From positions 185,348-249,347 of the IMG/VR virus record IMGVR_UViG_3300046507_000667: a DNA stretch of 64,000 bases; one strand, given 5' to 3'. Shown piece after piece: positions 13,044-63,957 of this stretch (positions are counted from its first letter, which is position 1; every line of letters begins with the position of its first letter). Both the position numbers and the translations under genes were made by a program. The notes under the pieces were generated by a model, which saw nothing but the letters and a program-made list of their open reading frames with translations, ran no database searches and was not told where the DNA came from.

Positions 13044-13430
13044 CTAAATCAATCCAAGAAGCTTTAAAGATTCTTCGTATTTTGGTGGAAGCTTGAAATT
13101 GTTTTCAACTCTAACACGAAAACTATAATGCATCTCTCTTTTGATTACATCTTTTTCGAATTGAAAGCTAGATGAATCTAACTCTACAAGAATGGATGCA
13201 ATCTTCATGCTATGAGTAGTACTAACATCAAACTTTTTGTAACCACTATTTTTTAATTTCGTTTCTAGATCAATTAGTAAAATGCTGATAATATGCTGCC
13301 ATGCATCATCAGCTGTAATGAATAACTGATTATCGTGAGTACTAGATTTTTCTTTATGTTTTTGATGATTTAATTCTTCAGTTGCTTTGAATGTTGTAAC
13401 TTCAGTAGTTGTTTTTTGAATAGCGTACAT
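13044..13430 (-). CDS. LP...LKLLG family paralogue (cluster 1)
   Basis: LFITADDA; ends KLPPKYEESLKLLGLI. Confidence 0.8.
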   Translation of the reverse strand: MYAIQKTTTEVTTFKATEELNHQKHKEKSSTHDNQLFITADDAWQHIISILLIDLETKLKNSGYKKFDVSTTHSMKIASILVELDSSSFQFEKDVIKREMHYSFRVRVENNFKLPPKYEESLKLLGLI

Positions 13431-13804
13431 TAGTTTTTTCCCACATTGTATCCATGAAGCTTTAAAATATTTAAAGCATCTTCTGGAATGGTATACATGC
13501 CAACTCCAACAGTAACTGTAATTTGAATTTTAGCATTGGAATCAGGTCTTGCAAGGACAATATGGAAGACACCTCCCATTGAATATTCTTCTTCAATGAA
13601 ACCATCTTGAAAGATTTCACCTTTAATGACTTTTTCTTTGATTTTATGAGCTACTTTAGATAACTCTTCTCTAGCTTGTTCTGGACTAAAGTAGAAGGTA
13701 GAATGATTGTGCCTAGCTTTAGGCTGCATTTCCTCTACTACTTTCTTATTAGGAGTATCAATCTCACGATACCATTGTGTTTCTGAAGAAAGAATATACA
13801 TCAT
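13430..13804 (-). CDS. LP...LKLLG family paralogue (cluster 1)
   Basis: YFSPEQA; TIPEDALNILKLHG. Confidence 0.8.
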   Translation of the reverse strand: MMYILSSETQWYREIDTPNKKVVEEMQPKARHNHSTFYFSPEQAREELSKVAHKIKEKVIKGEIFQDGFIEEEYSMGGVFHIVLARPDSNAKIQITVTVGVGMYTIPEDALNILKLHGYNVGKN

Positions 13805-47072: not shown

Positions 47073-49016
47073 TTATTCTACTTCACTTTCAGACGTCTTT
47101 ACAACCTTAACACCGATACCATTAAACATTGCACGTACTGACTGTGCAGCATTCGATGCATCGATATCTTGATCAATTTCAATAGATTCTAAAGTTTTTA
47201 CATCCTTCTGTAGAAGAGTCCGAATCATATTTTGTCGATTGGTACGACTTGATGAATATGCCTTAAGGAACTTATCAACTGTCTCCGGTTGCTCAAGCAA
47301 AGCAAAGTTAAAATATTCCTGTTCGCCAAATTTGATAGGATTTGAATTGAAAAGTGCATTTCCCTTTTTGTACTTATCATTATTCTTATACGGCACATCT
47401 AGCAGACTTGTCATTTCCGCCGCTCGTGCAGAGAACTTACCTGCTGGTACGTGCTTAAGCATGATAAAATACATATCACCAATAACGAGCTTATCTTCAA
47501 CTCCCTTGAATTTAATCTTTTCTACAGGGAACCGAGTATACAAGTCTTCCATGAGTTGAGGTGTTGAATTCTCATAGAATGGTGGTTGATGGATAAGAAT
47601 ACCATGCTCTTTAGCCTCTTCAAGCCACAAAGCAAGTACTTCATTCTCGCCATCATCAGTGTCAATGATATTCTCTTGGATGAACTGACCATACTTCGGA
47701 CAGACCATTTCATAGAATGTCATAATTTCACTGAGAAGCTTCTCATCATCATCTTTATTCTCACGGATGATATAGTCTGCAATGAAGTTTAATTCTTGCT
47801 CAAAACACTGAGCCAGATTCATACGACCAATAACACCTAGAGAATTCAGTGCAATATCAGCACGATGGAGACCATCTTCTGACATAGGCATTTCATCATC
47901 AGGTACAATTTTCGAGATAACACCCTTATTGCCGTATCGACCAGTAAGCTTAGCACCTACAGCTAGTGGAACATCAATAATGACTGTTACACGGACTACA
48001 ATACCTTCAAATTCACGCTTATCGAAGCTAAACTTGATTTCAGGATTCTTATAGTCTTTAGCTTTCTGGTACCAATAAGATAGATCCTCACTTAGCTTAC
48101 TACCTGCTTTCTTGTATTTTTCCACAAGATTAATAAGCTTAGTATAAATCTTATCTTGGGTATCAGCAATCTCTTTAAAATAGCTATTGTATGCTAAATC
48201 TAGCTCTTCTAGAAGATTACAGAATACTTCGATATCAGTAACAGTACCTGATGCATAGAATGGAGTATCATTAGGATTTACCTTACGAAACTCTGTATCA
48301 CGCATTTCATCTAGCATTGTACTATAGTTAATCCGACGACGAGCAGCTAGAATACCGCCAGTAATCTTTTCACCAATACGAGGAATACCTTTATAAACTT
48401 CTTTGGTACCTAGAAGATTAATTAAGATATCATTCTGATTAAGAACGATATCGAAGATCTGAACTTGCTGGTGACCATATTTCTCTGAAGCAGATTGACC
48501 AATGACAATACCATCTTCATAGGTAAGACCGTGAAATGGAATGAATACTGACTTGAGATTATTCCCAAACTTAAGGTTCAGGTTTTCATCATACATACCA
48601 TTCTTATAAATCCAGTCACCTTCAGCAATTGTATTACCTTTGACTACTTCTGTTTCATTTAGTTCTTGTTCAAAGCCATAAGTTTCAGTAAGATTCTTAG
48701 CCTTGGTCCAATTGATGATATTATATTCATCACCATCAAAAGTAATGATTAGCTTATGATTCTGATTAAATTCAAGAATCTCCATAATCTGAAGATCTTT
48801 CTTTGCAATCTTAAGACCAGTAGAATACTTACCGATCTGCTTTTCAAAACGAGTAAATACCTTTGGTGGTTCAGCACCTTTATATACAAGAAGCTGACCT
48901 TGATGACTAGTAAACATATTGACTCGACCACCATCACAGTGATTGACATTGGGAATCAGTAGTTCTTCTGCCAAGAATGAATGATCTAAAATTTCTTTTG
49001 TTGGTGTATCTGACAT
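47073..49016 (-). CDS. rpoB: RNA polymerase beta subunit, C-terminal part (non-virion, AR9 gp089-like)
   Basis: RVNMFTSHQGQ, GNNLKSVF, YEDGIVI, GAKLTGRYGNKGVISKI, LGVIGRMN, GKFSAR, KFGEQE. Confidence 0.92.
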   Translation of the reverse strand: MSDTPTKEILDHSFLAEELLIPNVNHCDGGRVNMFTSHQGQLLVYKGAEPPKVFTRFEKQIGKYSTGLKIAKKDLQIMEILEFNQNHKLIITFDGDEYNIINWTKAKNLTETYGFEQELNETEVVKGNTIAEGDWIYKNGMYDENLNLKFGNNLKSVFIPFHGLTYEDGIVIGQSASEKYGHQQVQIFDIVLNQNDILINLLGTKEVYKGIPRIGEKITGGILAARRRINYSTMLDEMRDTEFRKVNPNDTPFYASGTVTDIEVFCNLLEELDLAYNSYFKEIADTQDKIYTKLINLVEKYKKAGSKLSEDLSYWYQKAKDYKNPEIKFSFDKREFEGIVVRVTVIIDVPLAVGAKLTGRYGNKGVISKIVPDDEMPMSEDGLHRADIALNSLGVIGRMNLAQCFEQELNFIADYIIRENKDDDEKLLSEIMTFYEMVCPKYGQFIQENIIDTDDGENEVLALWLEEAKEHGILIHQPPFYENSTPQLMEDLYTRFPVEKIKFKGVEDKLVIGDMYFIMLKHVPAGKFSARAAEMTSLLDVPYKNNDKYKKGNALFNSNPIKFGEQEYFNFALLEQPETVDKFLKAYSSSRTNRQNMIRTLLQKDVKTLESIEIDQDIDASNAAQSVRAMFNGIGVKVVKTSESEVE

Positions 49017-57229: not shown

Positions 57230-58696
57230 TTATAGTTGCTCCACATAATTAAGGATTTCGACCATTGCTGATTTAATACTGATTTCCTTGGTAGGCTGAT
57301 AAGGCTCACCATTAGGTAGATTATACTCAGCAAAGTCTGTATTGATAACTTCACCAATAAATTGAGTAATCACTGTAATATCAGCTTTGGTATCGAGATG
57401 CTTATACTTATCGGCAATATTCTTAAAGACAGATGATTCTTTAATCTCTAAGAAATTCTTACCACGAGTAAAATTGTGTTTGATGGTATGCTTTGGTACT
57501 GGCTTACCAAGAAGAATATAGCTAATAAATGGATAGTTATTACGTTCAAACCATTCTTTTGCAATAAGAACTACCTTAACATAGTCCTCTTTATTCATCA
57601 TATAAGAATCAATTCCTTTACCAATCTGATTTGAGATAAAGAAATTGAGAATTTTGGTTTGCCCTGTATGAATGTCAATATGCTTCTTATAATAATCAAA
57701 TAGTGCAGGATCGACATACTTCATATTACGATCAATGAAGTTAGCGATATCTTCACGCATCAATACAATTTGAAGCTCACTAGATGTCTTCAGTAGTTTC
57801 TGTTCAACCTTTACAAAAGGATTGGAAGCATCTGAATCAGTCTTAGTAATACTCAGTGGCTTATAGGTTAACCGGAAGTTAGCAGTAAAATTGTATTCAA
57901 TTTGTTTCTTAATAACAACGTGAAAGAATGAGACAATTGACTTATTAACATCAAGCTTTGGAAGAATACTTGTCAATACATTACGATGGATTTCAATAGC
58001 CATTGTCTTATCATTGATAGATAAATTCTTCAAATAAGACCACATGACCTTATCAGAATACAATGTATTTGCTACTGCTGTTTCAACAAACTTCTGAATC
58101 TTGATGACTAGATCCAGTGGTTCACCATCATCATCAAAGTTGAACTTCTGGAGAATATGGTGGACAACTTCTAGAAAGAGTGTATCTTCTTTACGAATAT
58201 TATGTACTGCCATGAAATGACAGAGAAGAGGAATCACAGTCCGGAAAAGGATTGCAGAACCAATAATTCGCTTTGCATAGGAATCTTTGAACTGCAATTG
58301 ATTGTCTTTAGAAGGACTTTCAATAGTGATTTGATAATTCTCTTCAACGTAATCATAAATAGATTGAATTAGAGGTTCATCCTCAATAATATAATCACGA
58401 ATTGCTTCTGCAAGACGGATACGATCTTCTTGGCTATCACCATATTCACCTTGGTCCAGTAGCCCCTTGATAGTCAAATATGTTTCTGCAAGATGTGGGT
58501 TCTTTCCCAAAAAAGTATTTACATCGTCAATGAAAATATCAATTGACTTATGGAAAACACGCTTCTTAAGAAAGCTAAATCCAAACGACACGGTATCCAA
58601 AAGGCTTTCATCGGAGATATGTCCTTCAAAAACTTTATTCTTGAAGTCGATGTTGACAATTTTGTCTCCGTTGTGTGTTACAAATTTAGCGGCCAT
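57230..58696 (-). CDS. Sigma-like promoter-specificity subunit of the non-virion RNAP (AR9 gp226 / phiKZ gp68-like)
   Basis: LFRTVIPLLCHF, YSDKVMWSYLKNLS and ILPKLDVNKSIVSFFHVVIKKQIEY..TYKPL match my recollection of AR9 gp226; lies two genes from the chaperonin, as gp226 does from gp228. Confidence 0.75.
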   Translation of the reverse strand: MAAKFVTHNGDKIVNIDFKNKVFEGHISDESLLDTVSFGFSFLKKRVFHKSIDIFIDDVNTFLGKNPHLAETYLTIKGLLDQGEYGDSQEDRIRLAEAIRDYIIEDEPLIQSIYDYVEENYQITIESPSKDNQLQFKDSYAKRIIGSAILFRTVIPLLCHFMAVHNIRKEDTLFLEVVHHILQKFNFDDDGEPLDLVIKIQKFVETAVANTLYSDKVMWSYLKNLSINDKTMAIEIHRNVLTSILPKLDVNKSIVSFFHVVIKKQIEYNFTANFRLTYKPLSITKTDSDASNPFVKVEQKLLKTSSELQIVLMREDIANFIDRNMKYVDPALFDYYKKHIDIHTGQTKILNFFISNQIGKGIDSYMMNKEDYVKVVLIAKEWFERNNYPFISYILLGKPVPKHTIKHNFTRGKNFLEIKESSVFKNIADKYKHLDTKADITVITQFIGEVINTDFAEYNLPNGEPYQPTKEISIKSAMVEILNYVEQL

Positions 58697-59735: not shown

Positions 59736-61649
59736 TTAAAGGGACAATTGATTTGAATTAAGTAGTAGACCTACAATAGAGAATGATGCCCTTAAAATTT
59801 CAAGGTCTGTCTCTACTGGAGCTAAAACTGAAGTAGTTGTAATACTTTCAATTTCATCATTTACAATATTAAGAATCTTTGGGAAGCTCTTAGCATTGCA
59901 TTCAATTTCACCTACACTTAGTTCAATTGAATCTTCATAGAATGTATTAACCTTAGTTGGCATATCATTGATATATGATAGCCATGCCTCATAATCATTC
60001 TCTGCATCTGTCGGCATATCACGATTCTCAAATGGAATCATAGCTAGACTAACGTATGCAATAATTAAATCATTAATAACGTTCCATGCACACATATCTT
60101 CATTGTATTTATATAGATTCAATGATGGATCTACTTCATACAATGCTTTAAGAGTAATCAATGCATACAATGGAACAACGTTACCACCCATTGTATAACC
60201 ATTACGCATTACTGACTGACAAGCTAAAACTGAATCTTCTACTAGTTCTTTGATAGAAGTCTTTTCATCTTCAGTACGTCCACCAACAAAGATAGTTGAA
60301 TGAACACCTACTAGACTTGCTAGACGATTACGTAACTGACCACGCTTAATGATTAGATTCTTGGAAGTCTCATCAAGTTCTTTCTGAATATCAGCCATAC
60401 GTTTAGTATATGCTTCAGTACTCATACGAACTCCAGCACCAGTTTCAAATAATACTCCTTGAGGAGTAATAGTAACTTTACGTGCATTACCAATAAATGA
60501 GCCAAGATCCATATCTTTAATATTGTCTGGAGATACTTGTGAAAGACCTAATGGGTCAGTCTTAATATAAGCTGCCAAATCAAGGAATTTCTCATTAGCA
60601 TCATTACTTTCTAGACTTTCTGTCTTAAGATAGTATACTGAAAGTTCTTTAGCTAAGAATGATTCCTGTACAATCTTTTGAATAATTTCAGCTTGATATA
60701 CATCAGCAATAACTACGATTGGAGGAAGCTTTCCATCCTTACCATTAGCCACTACAGACATATTAGCTTTGATACCATCCACAATCTTTGAATGGAAATC
60801 GAAAAATTCATAACCTTGTAAGATCATAGGGTTCTCTAGCTCTACTGAAGTCTCTGACTTAAATAGAGAAGGATGAACCATACTTAATGCAGTAGTATGA
60901 TAGCCATAACGATTATTGATCTTAAGACCTTCATTATCGTCTGGAGCAAGCTTGATAGCTACTACTGAATGTGAGCTAAGAGTTGACATAAGTTGTGCAA
61001 CTTCTTGACCAATACTCTTATCATTATTATTTGATAAGGTTGCTACAGTAGTTAGAATACGAAGCTTATCTTCTTGTGACAATTCATCAAGTCGATATGT
61101 ATAATAGCGCTTAATGATAGTCTCTAGATCTTTTTGAAGCAGGTCTAAAAATGATACAAACTGCTTACGAGTACGGAAAGTATCTAGAATACTTTGATCA
61201 TTTTCATCAAATGTATCTTTGAGTACTTTATATACTTCATTAGCTGCCAGAATAGCTGATGTTGAACCATCACCAACCTTTTGTACTAGATTAGATGAAA
61301 TACTCATCACTAAACGATAGATAGTATCAGCACTAATGGTTGGAATCTTCATTGACTTAAGGATAGCTAAACCATCCTTAGTTACTAATTGCTCACCACC
61401 TTGACGAATTACTGTATTCGCACCATATGGACCATATGATTTACGAAGTACATCTGAAATTTCTTGAAGAACCTTTGATGTATTGTCGGTAAGAGTTTTA
61501 GCATCAAACATGTTCTCAATAAGCTTACTCTTAGTAGACTCTGTCTTGACAATTTCACCTGCAGGGGTATCATTAAAGTCAATGTCAGATAGCTTATTTT
61601 CTGCTACTAGTTCACGAATGAATGCTTTAATAGCTGCCTTGATAGTCAT
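59736..61649 (-). CDS. groEL: GroEL-like phage chaperonin
   Basis: LRKSYGPYGANTVI, VTKDGLAIL, VGDGSTSA, IFVGGRTEDE, EDSVLACQS, GGNVV. Confidence 0.88.
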   Translation of the reverse strand: MTIKAAIKAFIRELVAENKLSDIDFNDTPAGEIVKTESTKSKLIENMFDAKTLTDNTSKVLQEISDVLRKSYGPYGANTVIRQGGEQLVTKDGLAILKSMKIPTISADTIYRLVMSISSNLVQKVGDGSTSAILAANEVYKVLKDTFDENDQSILDTFRTRKQFVSFLDLLQKDLETIIKRYYTYRLDELSQEDKLRILTTVATLSNNNDKSIGQEVAQLMSTLSSHSVVAIKLAPDDNEGLKINNRYGYHTTALSMVHPSLFKSETSVELENPMILQGYEFFDFHSKIVDGIKANMSVVANGKDGKLPPIVVIADVYQAEIIQKIVQESFLAKELSVYYLKTESLESNDANEKFLDLAAYIKTDPLGLSQVSPDNIKDMDLGSFIGNARKVTITPQGVLFETGAGVRMSTEAYTKRMADIQKELDETSKNLIIKRGQLRNRLASLVGVHSTIFVGGRTEDEKTSIKELVEDSVLACQSVMRNGYTMGGNVVPLYALITLKALYEVDPSLNLYKYNEDMCAWNVINDLIIAYVSLAMIPFENRDMPTDAENDYEAWLSYINDMPTKVNTFYEDSIELSVGEIECNAKSFPKILNIVNDEIESITTTSVLAPVETDLEILRASFSIVGLLLNSNQLSL

Positions 61650-61684
61650 TGATTCTTTCCTAAATTTTTATGAGTAAATAAATA

Positions 61685-61717
61685 GCCCGAACTTCTTGTC
61701 TAATAAGAAGTTCGGGT
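61685..61717 (-). terminator. Hairpin terminator after the frameshift extension
   Basis: CCCGAACTTCTT...AAGAAGTTCGGG. Confidence 0.75.
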
Positions 61718-61721
61718 ATTT

Positions 61722-61979
61722 TTAAGTTCTCTTTCGTTGTTGTTCTTTCATCGCATCTTCTTCAGCTTTCTTCTTTTCTTTAAGATAATCAATCTGAGCA
61801 GTAGTCAGATCATTTAAGAAAGGGATTGGAATCTGGAGAAGTTCAGAGAGTGACATCCGACCTTGAAATAAATCCAAAGTAGATACCACTCCCTTTAGCT
61901 GCATCTTATAGAATTCTTCTGATGTAGCTTCTGCCTCAGCAACTACTTCAATTATACCGAAGTTGCTTCGGCGATAGCG
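61722..61979 (-). CDS. C-terminal extension reached by -1 frameshift from the upstream gene (includes the 61722..61904 ORF)
   Basis: The -1 frame is open from the slippery site: RYRRSNFG...EEFYKMQLKGVVSTLDLFQGRMSLSELL. Confidence 0.7.
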   Translation of the reverse strand, partial: RYRRSNFGIIEVVAEAEATSEEFYKMQLKGVVSTLDLFQGRMSLSELLQIPIPFLNDLTTAQIDYLKEKKKAEEDAMKEQQRKRT

Positions 61980-63361
61980 AAAAAAAGCAGACTTGTAATA
62001 TCTACGTCAATATTTTCAATTAGCTTCTTGCAAGTATCACCAGCACAATTAAAAGCAGGAATACGATACTGTACTCGATATTGACGAATACGATCGCTAA
62101 TTGCCTTATTTAGTACCTTTAGATCACCTGCTGAAAGATTAGCGATTGAAGGTAGAATCTGATGAATATCAGAAACTTCGTAGTATCGAACTTGACCACG
62201 GCTAAATGCTTCAACATCTGGCACCATGATTTGCTTGATATACTTGTGAAGAACGATAATTTCATCTTCGAACTTACCAGCAAACTTTTGTGTCAGACTC
62301 ATATTGTCTAGCATACGCTGTAGTGTTGGCGTAAGTAGTTCAATAACGATACGTGAATCTGGAAGAATAATACGCTTGGTCTTAGCTACCATTGAGTTAC
62401 TTAGGAACTCACGACCACGGTTTACACCTTGAAGAACATCAGCAACATATGTACCAGCTTTTTCTTGATCGACTACTTCAATTAGAGTGTCTGGTAATAG
62501 CTTGATGTTGTTTTTCGCAGCACAATGGGGACATTGCACAGTGTATTCTGTAGCTTGAGGGAAAGTAGGATAGTAGATACCATACAGAAGTGTTTCATAA
62601 TCTTCATCCGCAGTTACGTTCAGAAAATCAGCAAATTTCATTGAACCAACTGATGTTTCTGCAATTTTAGAGAAAACTAGCTTTAGTAGCTTAATTGTCT
62701 GATCGTAAGGAGTTCCACGGAAATTACGAACTGCAATCTTATCGTTATTATTCAGTGCCTTAAATGAAAGACGATAGCCACTCTTTAGAGCAATAACAGG
62801 GAATGATGGTGATGCATCAATTGTGTTAATGATCTGCAGTTGTTGTTGAATTGGTAGTGGATTATCGGCTTTAACAGGTACAATGGCATCTACGTCCACT
62901 GATACATTATTAAGAATATTCCTAACCTTATCAACTTGAGCACCAGCACCTTGAGCTTTGCGCTGTGCAAATAGCTCTTGCATTGCATCTAGTAATAGAT
63001 TAACTACTTCCATACGGTTAGGATCTTTTTCATCAGCCTCAACATCTTCAGCTAGAGTAGCTTCAAGAGTTGGCTTGACTTCTGCCTTAACAGGAGTAGC
63101 GGGTATGGCTGGAATTACAGCTACTGGATCAATGGTAGTTGATTGAACAGCAGTGCTTACTGGTTGTGCTAGTTCTTGTGGCAATGTAGTTGATGATTGC
63201 TGTGCAATTGCTTCTTGAGCTTGTTGTACTGCCATCTGTTCAGGAGTCAGATCAGCATCACTAATAGCTGTTGTTGGTGCAGCTACTTGACCGGGAGTCT
63301 GAAGTGAACTGATTAGGTCTGTGACTGAACCAAATGATTGATTTTCCATAATTCTTTCCAA
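61952..63361 (-). CDS. Baseplate hub / tail assembly chaperone (T4 gp26-like) with low-complexity N-terminus
   Basis: YETLLYGIYYPTF...YTVQCPHC..N, LLTPTL, FNCAGDTCKK; follows a gp25-like gene. Confidence 0.65.
   Translation of the reverse strand: MERIMENQSFGSVTDLISSLQTPGQVAAPTTAISDADLTPEQMAVQQAQEAIAQQSSTTLPQELAQPVSTAVQSTTIDPVAVIPAIPATPVKAEVKPTLEATLAEDVEADEKDPNRMEVVNLLLDAMQELFAQRKAQGAGAQVDKVRNILNNVSVDVDAIVPVKADNPLPIQQQLQIINTIDASPSFPVIALKSGYRLSFKALNNNDKIAVRNFRGTPYDQTIKLLKLVFSKIAETSVGSMKFADFLNVTADEDYETLLYGIYYPTFPQATEYTVQCPHCAAKNNIKLLPDTLIEVVDQEKAGTYVADVLQGVNRGREFLSNSMVAKTKRIILPDSRIVIELLTPTLQRMLDNMSLTQKFAGKFEDEIIVLHKYIKQIMVPDVEAFSRGQVRYYEVSDIHQILPSIANLSAGDLKVLNKAISDRIRQYRVQYRIPAFNCAGDTCKKLIENIDVDITSLLFFAIAEATSV
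61957..61985 (-). promoter_or_regulatory. Programmed -1 ribosomal frameshift signal
   Basis: In-phase T TTT TTC heptamer (61985-61979), 7-nt spacer, CCGAAG-CAA-CTTCGG hairpin (61971-61957). Confidence 0.75.
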
Positions 63362-63453
63362 AGAAGTTATTGTGATACGATAGGAGAAACAGACTTCGAC
63401 TAATTTGAAGTTCGAATTCTGAGTCTCCTACCAAAATGTGATAAAAGTTCTTA

Positions 63454-63957
63454 TTAGATATAAATCTGTGAAACTAAGCTACCAGATCTTGTCACATTAC
63501 CATCTACTGTGATAGCGAATGCATTTGAGCTATTAAATTGTGTATTAGTATTCTTTAGCTGAAAAATGATTGCTACTTTATTTCGATCGGTAATCTGAGG
63601 ATTTGGTGTTAAAGTAAAATCAACGATTTGATCGGTTGGAAGCCATATATCAATTTGACTTTGAATAGCTTGCTTGAGATCTGAAAGAGTAATACTATCA
63701 GCAATTTCCATTAGATAGTTACGGATACCAACCCCCATACTTGGTGCTGCAGGATTGGTACCACGTTCCATTAATAGTAAATCTCTCAAGCGGAAAGCTA
63801 ATGCAATGTAATCTGAGTATGTTTGTGTTTGATTGAATGCATTCATAGTGAAAGAAATTTCATCTTTCAATGCTTCAGTCTGTGCATCTGTAAATACATT
63901 GCTAAATGTAGCTAAAGTAGAAGCAATCGACGCATTAGGAGAGATTGGTGCTGGCAT
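63454..63957 (-). CDS. Baseplate wedge protein (T4 gp25 / GpW-like)
   Basis: RDLLLMERGTNPAAPSMGVGIRNYL...IQSQIDIWLP. Confidence 0.75.
   Translation of the reverse strand: MPAPISPNASIASTLATFSNVFTDAQTEALKDEISFTMNAFNQTQTYSDYIALAFRLRDLLLMERGTNPAAPSMGVGIRNYLMEIADSITLSDLKQAIQSQIDIWLPTDQIVDFTLTPNPQITDRNKVAIIFQLKNTNTQFNSSNAFAITVDGNVTRSGSLVSQIYI

Follow-up and report, generated by a model that had tools for sequence, protein, structure and literature searches.

A conserved, probable -1 frameshift in a jumbo phage gene related to the T4 baseplate-hub assembly chaperones gp26 and gp51

Does a jumbo phage gene for a putative baseplate-hub chaperone encode one protein or two? The question arose from a stretch of 64,000 nucleotides (the window; positions 185,348 to 249,347 of IMG/VR record IMGVR_UViG_3300046507_000667). 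On its minus strand, a large ORF ends in a run of T's shortly before its stop codon, and a small ORF follows in the -1 frame. The first-pass annotation, made from the sequence alone, read this as a programmed -1 frameshift that joins a gp26-like chaperone to the downstream ORF, as in lambda G/GT. The observation was confirmed by direct reading of the sequence. The 0 frame runs CTG CTT TTT TTC GCT and on to the stop TAA at 61954-61952. After a -1 slip, the frame reads CGC TAT CGC CGA and remains open for 25 codons into ATG 61904 and on to the stop at 61724-61722. The nearest upstream stop in the -1 frame is a TGA at 62009-62007. The ORF list agrees. The likely start of the large gene is ATG 63349, preceded by GGAAAG, and not TTG 63361. 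Products of 465 and 542 amino acids are predicted from the ATG, and of 469 and 546 amino acids from the TTG. The features of the locus are collected in the table.

Table. Features on the minus strand of the window at and around the predicted frameshift site.
Position	Feature	Support
63454..63957	gp25-like baseplate wedge gene, directly upstream	PHROG 261/43 'baseplate wedge subunit'; orthologues carry PF04965 GPW_gp25
61952..63349	Large 0-frame gene, gp26/gp51-type hub assembly chaperone homologue (465 aa from ATG 63349; 469 aa if TTG 63361); residues 1-135 disordered, core residues 180-465	phrog_18873; homologues; PF12322 in the orthologue P0016 and in 10 of 17 family members; AF2 model and BFVD fold hits
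62522..62533	First zinc knuckle, CPHC (Cys273, Cys276)	Invariant columns in two alignments (A1 and A4)
62030..62047	Second cysteine pair, C-AGDT-C (Cys435, Cys440), just upstream of the slip site	C440 invariant, C435 at least 90% conserved (same alignments)
61979..61985	Slippery heptamer T TTT TTC in the 0 frame, containing the family-wide tetramer T_TTY	Sequence; [C/A]TT TT[T/C] in 22 of 22 loci; codon-choice bias
61952..62006	Overlap with both 0 and -1 frames open; the shift must occur here	Sequence; overlap of 31-79 nt in most relatives
61956..61972	Hairpin 6 nt downstream of the heptamer (7 bp, 3-nt loop); possible local stimulator, not conserved in relatives	-8.5 kcal/mol, z -2.8; no consensus structure in 11 relatives; per-locus z-scores from -3.4 to +1.4
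61722..61979	-1 frame extension of 85 aa plus stop: linker (RYRRSNFG...), helix-loop-helix domain with conserved LDLF.G...PIPFL motif, basic tail	Alignments A2/A6; AF2 pLDDT 83; 199 family members at E<=1e-3
61722..61904	60-aa ORF as seen by a gene caller (ATG 61904); 3' part of the extension	ORF list; weak Shine-Dalgarno pairing, -1.5 kcal/mol against a median of -4.2 for real starts
61686..61716	Intrinsic terminator after the extension, ending the gp25-like/chaperone transcription unit	-20.3 kcal/mol, z -6.9; annotated terminator at the same place in phiR1-37
59736..61649	GroEL-like chaperonin gene, conserved downstream neighbour	PF00118 and phrog_5725; downstream in every related locus long enough to reach the next gene

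Within a single window, a downstream gene in the -1 frame is not rare. Extensions in the -1 frame after stop codons are common because genes are tightly packed, and window-only statistics were not used as evidence. The evidence beyond chance is comparative. Examined were 22 distinct related loci from AR9/PBS1, phiR1-37, Staphylococcus jumbo phages and metagenomic contigs, including one of 65% GC. In all 22, the downstream peptide lies in the -1 frame without an intervening stop. The -1 frame is open from 31-79 nt before the 0-frame stop, more in the longest cases, and runs 68-119 codons past it. The +1 frame closes after 1-40 codons. Conservation of the heptamer in AR9/phiR1-37-like orthologues had been proposed in advance as a check, and its absence as part of a refutation. 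The full X XXY YYZ heptamer, T TTT TT[C/A/T/G], was present in 13 of the 22 loci, whereas the overlap began with [C/A]TT TT[T/C] in every one; only the tetramer T_TTY is universal. The relative with 65% GC still has CTT TTT A. The Leu codon before TTY was CTT in 14 of 14 Leu loci scored, although CTT makes up only 9-50% of Leu codons in the same genes. In E. coli, U_UU.Y is the second-best -1 tetramer class and H_HH.U_UU.Y is among the best heptamer classes (PMC4066793). The genome is complete and holds only one such gene.

The downstream peptide usually has no start codon of its own. In 14 of 19 loci scored, no ATG, GTG or TTG lies upstream of the conserved LDLF motif, and two of the related loci, L015 and L018, have none anywhere in the -1 ORF. 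Gene callers found no gene there in loci L015-L018. Yet the stretch after the 0-frame stop and before any start codon evolves as coding sequence in the -1 frame: differences between seven independent pairs fall 44/33/79 on -1-frame codon positions 1/2/3. An independent start at 61904 driven by a ribosome-binding site had been named beforehand as an outcome that would speak against the frameshift. The Shine-Dalgarno score of this ATG is typical of internal ATGs, and a start here would cut the predicted helix 14-37 of the extension in half.

The first-pass annotation had included the downstream hairpin in the signal. The hairpin is real in the window, and a longer fold reaches -19.9 kcal/mol, z -3.1. 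Some close relatives also have a structure there (z -2 to -2.5), but it is absent in many others and RNAalifold found no pairs on 11 relatives. A stimulatory structure 5-9 nt downstream of the slip site is a feature of the window and of some relatives, which leaves its part in the signal undecided, and it was rejected as a family feature.

The identity of the large protein rests on transitive homology. The window protein itself had no Pfam hit at E<=1, but it matches the homologue P0016 at E 2.7e-24. P0016 scores 33.4 bits over residues 227-471 against a gathering score of 24.5 for PF12322 (T4_baseplate), the family that holds both T4 gp26 and gp51. Ten of 17 family members hit this profile at E<=1, and hhalign against the gp51 alignment was weak (E 0.002), so that the profile match alone does not decide membership for the window protein. 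The predicted fold agrees with that of annotated hub assembly proteins. A Foldseek search of BFVD gave 58 hits at E<=1e-3, including 'Baseplate hub assembly protein, bacteriophage T4-like', 'Baseplate hub subunit' and 'Baseplate hub assembly chaperone', with TM 0.6-0.72 normalised to the target and probability 1.0. The two conserved cysteine pairs have counterparts in T4: gp51 has CPKC...CC and gp26 has C.C...CPEC.

The interpretation in the first-pass annotation was supported. Most of its claims held: the -1 link, the gp26-like label, the placement of the phage as AR9/phiR1-37-like, and the position of the gene after a gp25-like gene and before a GroEL-like gene. No tape measure gene lies nearby. 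Corrections concern the heptamer, which is not universal, the hairpin, which is not conserved, and the ATG at 61904, which has no better ribosome-binding site than a random internal ATG.

The best explanation, held with good confidence, is that the chaperone gene is decoded in two ways. Most ribosomes would end at the TAA and make the short form of 465 amino acids. A fraction would slip one base back on the T-run, with tRNA-Phe re-pairing from TTY to TTT; on the heptamer of the window, the P- and A-site tRNAs can slip together. These ribosomes would continue in the -1 frame and make the long form of 542 amino acids. In this view, the long form shares residues 1-457 with the short form (junction ...SLLFF/RYRR..., within LIENIDVDITSLLFFR) and replaces the last eight residues of the final helix by a linker of roughly 20 amino acids and a helix-loop-helix domain of roughly 60 amino acids. 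The predicted junction is ...EEMLF followed by SSSSSGGLK in AR9 and ...QILF followed by YR in phiR1-37. The analysis demonstrated the arrangement, its conservation, the lack of an independent start, the coding constraint in the -1 frame and the chaperone homology. It is by inference that the shift is ascribed to the ribosome, that the long form is taken as the minor product and that, as with lambda G/GT, both forms are thought to share a chaperone body while the extension binds a second partner during hub or tail initiation. There is no protein or ribosome-profiling evidence, no RNA run was listed, and the product ratio is unknown. Nine of 22 loci have only the tetramer, and tetramers without a stimulator are barely shifty in E. 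coli (PMC4066793). The role of the extension is unknown; a complex prediction of the extension with the chaperone core and the gp25-like protein gave no answer, and PDB fold matches of the extension were only generic helix-loop-helix structures. Literature searches found no description of this frameshift, and no GenBank annotation of it was found.

Other origins of the arrangement are unlikely. A phage RNA polymerase may stutter on the T-run and add one U to part of the mRNA, with the same protein outcome. The window has seven consecutive T's and the related locus L022 has eight. AR9-type phages use unusual multisubunit RNA polymerases, pieces of which are encoded in the window, and U7 runs are depleted in enterobacterial genes, partly because of such slippage (PMC4066793). 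However, nine of 22 loci have only four to six T's (Machias four; AR9, phiR1-37 and locus L028 five), which is too short for known polymerase slippage. The motif is always in phase with the 0 frame as NTT TTY, which matters for tRNA re-pairing but not for a polymerase. Even less likely is an independent small gene, translated from its own start (ATG 61904 here, a rare start codon elsewhere) or by termination-reinitiation, with an incidental -1 phase. The window and loci L014, L019, L021 and L007 have an ATG, GTG or TTG upstream of the conserved motif, and GenBank records annotate a separate small CDS. Against this stand the invariant -1 phase, the two loci without any start codon, annotated starts that are TTG, CTG or an ATG inside the conserved domain, the coding constraint on the start-less stretch, the poor ribosome-binding site and the maintenance of the T-run by codon choice.

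An assembly indel in the error-prone homopolymer, or a pseudogene splitting an ancestral in-frame gene, is very unlikely. The same break occurs at the same codon in isolates and in independent assemblies, the independent strain contigs X3 and X4 carry no indel in the T-run, and the 0-frame tail after the slip site is itself conserved ([FL][AG]I[AV]GE...). A profile search of 1.84 billion representatives for natural in-frame fusions found only two long database proteins, P0134 and P0218. Both are frame-switched upstream of the T-run, and the name of the P0218 contig suggests a 3x assembly. They look like indel variants or assembly errors and were rejected as support for the fusion.

The arrangement resembles the -1 frameshift of the tail assembly chaperones gpG/gpGT of lambda and E/E+E' of P2. 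Two products would share an N-terminal chaperone body, the slip lies a few codons before the 0-frame stop, the second ORF has no start of its own, and the arrangement is conserved despite low sequence identity. The gene differs in its position between a gp25-like wedge gene and a GroEL-like gene instead of immediately upstream of a tape measure gene; genes further along are ligase, RNA polymerase, UvsX and primase. The protein is three to four times larger than gpG and has a zinc-binding core of the PF12322 type, and the slippery site is a T-run rather than G GGA AAG. For residues 172-273 in the first core domain, the top VIA matches in the PDB were tail assembly chaperones (3klu YqbN, Z 4.3; 2ob9 HK97, Z 3.5-3.9; 3fgx, Z 3.3). 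This resemblance is weak; Foldseek against the PDB gave E 0.85 and no Pfam tail-assembly-chaperone family matched, so that a gpG-like fold is neither assigned nor dismissed. Residues 160-275 were not folded alone and searched against tail-assembly-chaperone structures. ESM Atlas neighbours of the extension include P2 GpE clusters. In phiR1-37, g241 and g242 lack the 'phage structural protein' note carried by g239, g240 and g244, the only hint on absence from virions; a fixed product ratio and a requirement for assembly were not assayed. The -1 sites of the IS3 family and dnaX also use Z_ZZN / X_XXZ_ZZN motifs, and U_UU.U_UU.C and U_UU.Y occur in IS elements (PMC4066793). Those sites usually have a defined stimulator, an upstream SD-like sequence or a downstream hairpin or pseudoknot, whereas no conserved stimulator was found here.

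T4 gp26 and gp51 are both listed as hub assembly chaperones (PMC3004832). Besides core fold and cysteine pairs, the location next to gene 25 is shared. T4 gp26 ends just after the second zinc knuckle (...LKEFFELL), like the short form, and gp51 continues for about 48 more residues (Pfam Gp51_C), like the long form. The protein described here has an extra disordered and helical N-terminal region of about 180 amino acids. T4 uses two separate paralogous genes without a frameshift and is the stated exception to G-T frameshifting (PMC5009743). A frameshift from T4 gene 26 into gene 25 was considered, as gene 25 is in the -1 frame of gene 26, but a TGA closes that frame and there is no slippery site. 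Sequence homology of the -1 domain to the gp51 C-terminus was not significant: hhalign gave E 0.14-0.15 with inconsistent registers, HMM searches gave E>=0.2, and the 52 small homologues carry no precomputed Pfam family. However, 41 of the 100 nearest ESM Atlas clusters for the window peptide, and 56 of 100 named clusters for the AR9 peptide, have members carrying PF28602 (Gp51_C), with scores of 0.89-0.92. PF28602 was not among the profiles searched, the model of the extension was not superposed on a T4 gp51 model, and these observations do not settle whether the two domains are related. The module was not found in phiKZ and Goslar by searches with alignments A4 and A6 or PF12322.

A more far-reaching reading is not excluded, but is tentative. 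The gp26/gp51 hub chaperones may be divergent tail assembly chaperones, and the T4 paralogues 26 (short) and 51 (long, with the Gp51_C extension) would be the unfused equivalents of the short and long products made here from one gene. In this case, the G/GT principle, one chaperone body with and without an adaptor domain, would be universal among long-tailed phages, and T4 would meet it by gene duplication instead of recoding. This may explain why T4 seemed to lack the lambda-type frameshift.

Programmed -1 frameshifting in tail assembly chaperone genes is a hallmark of long-tailed phages, and T4 is the textbook exception (PMC5009743). The well-supported and apparently undescribed frameshift places this device in a different chaperone family, the T4-type hub chaperones, in the uracil-DNA jumbo phages (PBS1/AR9, phiR1-37, Staphylococcus jumbo phages). 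It corrects the annotation of a small orphan ORF family of about 200 clusters at 50% identity and predicts a previously unseen long protein in cultivable model phages. It also gives a concrete, testable account of what gp26 and gp51 do relative to each other.

The complete 249,347-bp phage genome has direct terminal repeats, and the window is its last 64 kb. The DNA was best represented in rhizosphere metagenome runs. The nearest isolates are Yersinia phage phiR1-37 (35% identity), the Bacillus phages AR9/PBS1, and Staphylococcus and Listeria jumbo phages. On the minus strand, a gp25-like wedge gene is followed by a large ORF, a 60-aa ORF, a strong intrinsic terminator and a GroEL-like gene. 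The large ORF ends CTG CTT TTT TTC GCT ATC GCC GAA GCA ACT TCG GTA TAA and contains an in-phase slippery heptamer. The -1 frame runs without a stop through the start of the small ORF to its end. A 7-bp hairpin begins 6 nt after the heptamer. The predicted products have 465 and 542 aa, or 469 and 546 aa if translation starts at the TTG. The first-pass annotation had described a slippery heptamer with a hairpin and an open -1 frame into the 60-aa ORF, and this observation is correct in every particular.

Coordinates of the features in the window and in related loci
Feature	Position	Strand	Remarks
gp25-like wedge gene	63957-63454	minus	upstream of the large ORF
Large ORF	ATG 63349 to TAA 61954-61952	minus	ATG preceded by GGAAAG; the ORF list gives TTG 63361
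N-terminal region of the large protein	62945-63349	minus	residues 1-135, predicted to be disordered
Open -1 frame	62006 to 61722	minus	runs through ATG 61904
Heptamer T TTT TTC	61985-61979	minus	in phase with the 0 frame
Hairpin	61972-61956	minus	-8.5 kcal/mol, z -2.8
60-aa ORF	ATG 61904 to 61722	minus	
Intrinsic terminator	61716-61686	minus	
GroEL-like gene	61649-59736	minus	
Gene trio, wedge to GroEL-like	window 59736-63957		
Strain variant sites	62006-62096		7-8 positions, within the compared stretch 61650-62150
Two small ORFs (124 and 128 aa)	13044-13804	minus	overlap by one base
RNA polymerase beta-like genes	47073-49016 and 57230-58696	minus	split genes
Small ORF start, phiR1-37 g242	L001:4362		TTG
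Small ORF start, AR9 gp229	L002:3981		CTG
Small ORF start, Machias gp196	L003:4149		ATG inside the conserved domain
T4 gene 26/25 junction	L025:2803-2830		TAATG
Joined database protein P0218	L028:3001-4710		569 aa

Within one window, a downstream gene in the -1 frame is common because genes are packed. The arrangement was tested by comparison with related loci collected from GenBank phages, IMG/VR, metagenomes and assemblies. This gave 22 distinct loci with large-protein identities down to 21-23%. In all 22, the downstream peptide lies in the -1 frame of the large gene. This frame is open from a few dozen nucleotides before the 0-frame stop and continues 68-119 codons past it, while the +1 frame closes after 1-40 codons. 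In all 22, the overlap starts at the same codon pair, [C/A]TT TT[T/C], encoding the conserved ...L/I-F of the last helix. Conservation of the heptamer in AR9/phiR1-37-like orthologues had been set beforehand as a check. Thirteen loci have a canonical X XXY YYZ heptamer (T TTT TTC/A/T/G), whereas nine keep only the tetramer T_TTY, including phiR1-37 (CTT TTT ACC), AR9 (CTT TTT CAT), Machias (CTT TTC AAG) and a 65% GC contig (CTT TTT ACC). The T preceding TTY is held by codon choice: the Leu codon is CTT in 14 of 14 loci scored, although CTT is only 9-50% of Leu codons in the same genes.

The gene order is also kept. The gp25-like wedge gene, the gp26/51-like gene with its -1 extension and the GroEL-like chaperonin gene, sometimes preceded by one extra small ORF, stay together among the collected loci (L001-L028) in every relative whose contig reaches the next gene, down to 21-23% identity and in a 65% GC phage. 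The flanking genes differ. In the window and in phiR1-37, a terminator separates the chaperone unit from the GroEL-like gene.

An independent small gene with its own ribosome-binding site at ATG 61904 had been named in advance as the outcome that would count against a frameshift. This start pairs with the anti-SD at -1.5 kcal/mol, no better than a typical internal ATG (median -1.2 kcal/mol) and in contrast to a median of -4.2 kcal/mol for 43 real starts. It also falls in the middle of the predicted helix 14-37 of the extension. Two related loci (L015 and L018) have no ATG, GTG or TTG anywhere in the -1 ORF, and in 14 of 19 loci scored none lies upstream of the conserved LDLF.G motif. Gene callers found nothing there in four contigs. 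The GenBank starts of the small ORF in phiR1-37, AR9 and Machias are inconsistent and all cut off conserved residues; these CDSs look mis-annotated. Peptide similarity runs back to the T-run itself, with FFRYRRG in the phiR1-37-like clade and a Ser/Gly-rich linker in the Bacillus/Staphylococcus clade. In the stretch after the 0-frame stop and before any start codon, differences between seven independent pairs fall 44/33/79 on -1-frame codon positions 1/2/3, the signature of translated sequence. A profile of the extension found 199 clusters among 1.84 billion representatives. Nearly all are orphans of 41-123 aa whose called N-termini begin at arbitrary profile positions, and several longer ones contain the junction (TFYS.LR, NFFANLR, TFFSNFR).

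Transcriptional slippage on the seven T's cannot be excluded for this phage. T-runs of only four or five in other members and the strict phasing of the motif make it an unlikely general explanation. Assembly error is excluded by the conservation and by independent strain contigs without an indel. These contigs, X3 and X4 from two other rhizosphere runs, differ from the window only on third codon positions of the 0 frame, and no variant lies in the 356 nt from 61650 to 62005 that hold the overlap and the extension. One variant removes the upstream -1-frame stop (TGA to CGA), as in the related locus L004. Two database proteins, P0134 (313 aa) and P0218, join the chaperone body and the extension in one ORF. 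In both, the frame switches upstream of the T-run. P0218 has a stretch of out-of-frame Arg/Gly-rich sequence and comes from a contig whose name (ctg27073_3x_l) suggests 3x coverage. They are probably indel errors and not natural fusions.

In E. coli, U_UU.Y is the second most shift-prone tetramer class, H_HH.U_UU.Y heptamers are among the best, and both occur in IS elements (PMC4066793). The universal, in-phase T_TTY is what a ribosomal -1 slip of tRNA-Phe needs. The heptamer of the window would also allow tandem P/A-site slippage, and either route would give the junction ...SLLFF/RYRR. The layout, its conservation and the coding signature were read from the sequences, while the ribosomal slip is inferred. 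There are no expression data, and the efficiency is unknown. The downstream hairpin may help in this phage but is not a family feature: RNAalifold found no consensus in 11 relatives, and per-locus z-scores run from -3.4 to +1.4. The proposed interpretation as a G/GT-like -1 frameshift in a gp26-like chaperone gene was supported.

The two small ORFs at 13044-13804 of the window overlap by one base (stop/start). The second is in the -1 frame and open for 97 nt upstream, and several in-phase slippery heptamers (TTTAAAT, TTTAAAG, GGGAAAA, AAAAAAC) lie in the overlap. Neither has a PHROG match, and a Dda-like helicase gene follows. This is probably ordinary translational coupling. T4 gene 25 starts on the last base of the gene 26 stop codon and is in the -1 frame of gene 26. 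A TGA closes that frame just upstream and there is no T-run; this is coupling and not frameshifting.

The large protein of the window has no Pfam hit of its own. Its homologue P0016 (E 2.7e-24) passes the gathering score of PF12322 over residues 227-471, and 10 of 17 family members hit that family at E<=1. PF12322 matches both T4 gp26 (215.6 bits) and gp51 (177.5 bits), which are listed as hub assembly chaperones (PMC3004832). The AF2 model has a disordered N-terminal region and a core (residues 180-465) at pLDDT around 90. In BFVD, the model matches proteins named baseplate hub assembly protein, chaperone or subunit, with TM 0.6-0.72 normalised to the target. Four cysteines (273, 276, 435 and 440) are conserved, and the genome has only one such gene. 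The disordered N-terminal third is rich in Ala/Gln/Pro/Thr/Glu and varies widely in length and sequence among relatives (large proteins of 398-640 aa); T4 gp26 and gp51 have nothing like it. The extension is predicted as a helix-loop-helix with a basic tail (pLDDT 83). Its PDB matches are generic, and its partner was not identified, a complex prediction giving no answer. In other phages, a BFVD hit of the large protein and one of the extension have neighbouring UniProt accessions: I1VX76/I1VX77, A0A191ZCG4/A0A191ZCG7 in Erwinia phage Special G and A0A343LED6/A0A343LED7 in Leptospira phage LE4. The two-part module may reach beyond AR9-like phages, although phiKZ and Goslar gave no sequence hit.

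None of the six GenBank records inspected annotates a joined CDS, and literature searches found no description of this frameshift. The G/GT device itself is known, but here the gene is not beside a tape measure gene. Its neighbours are the wedge gene and the GroEL-like gene, and further along come ligase, RNA polymerase, UvsX and primase genes. The split RNA polymerase beta-like genes, typical of the phage-encoded multisubunit polymerases of AR9/phiKZ-type phages, lie among ligase, UvsX-like and primase genes; late and replication genes are interleaved here. The protein is much larger than gpG and belongs to another family.

Three weak lines of evidence point to a link with G/GT. In a scan of 48,161 PDB representatives that did not rely on Foldseek, the first core domain (residues 172-273) matched best to 3klu YqbN (Z 4.3). 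YqbN is an XkdN-like tail assembly chaperone. This name is used for the family in PMC11948020. The HK97 tail assembly chaperone 2ob9 ranked fourth (Z 3.5; Z 3.9 and the top hit in a Foldseek-seeded run), and 3fgx ranked seventh. These Z values are low and provide a lead, not proof. T4 gp26 ends right after the second zinc knuckle, like the short form, whereas gp51 carries about 48 more residues, annotated as PF28602 Gp51_C, like the long form. The ESM Atlas neighbours of the extension are largely clusters whose members carry Gp51_C, 41 of 100 for the window peptide and 56 of 100 named clusters for the AR9 peptide; P2 GpE clusters also appear. Against this, profile comparisons with T4-like gp51 are not significant, and the small homologues carry no precomputed Pfam family. 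T4 is cited as the exception to G-T frameshifting (PMC5009743). It is a tentative idea, possible rather than likely, that one gene plus a frameshift in this phage equals genes 26 and 51 in T4.
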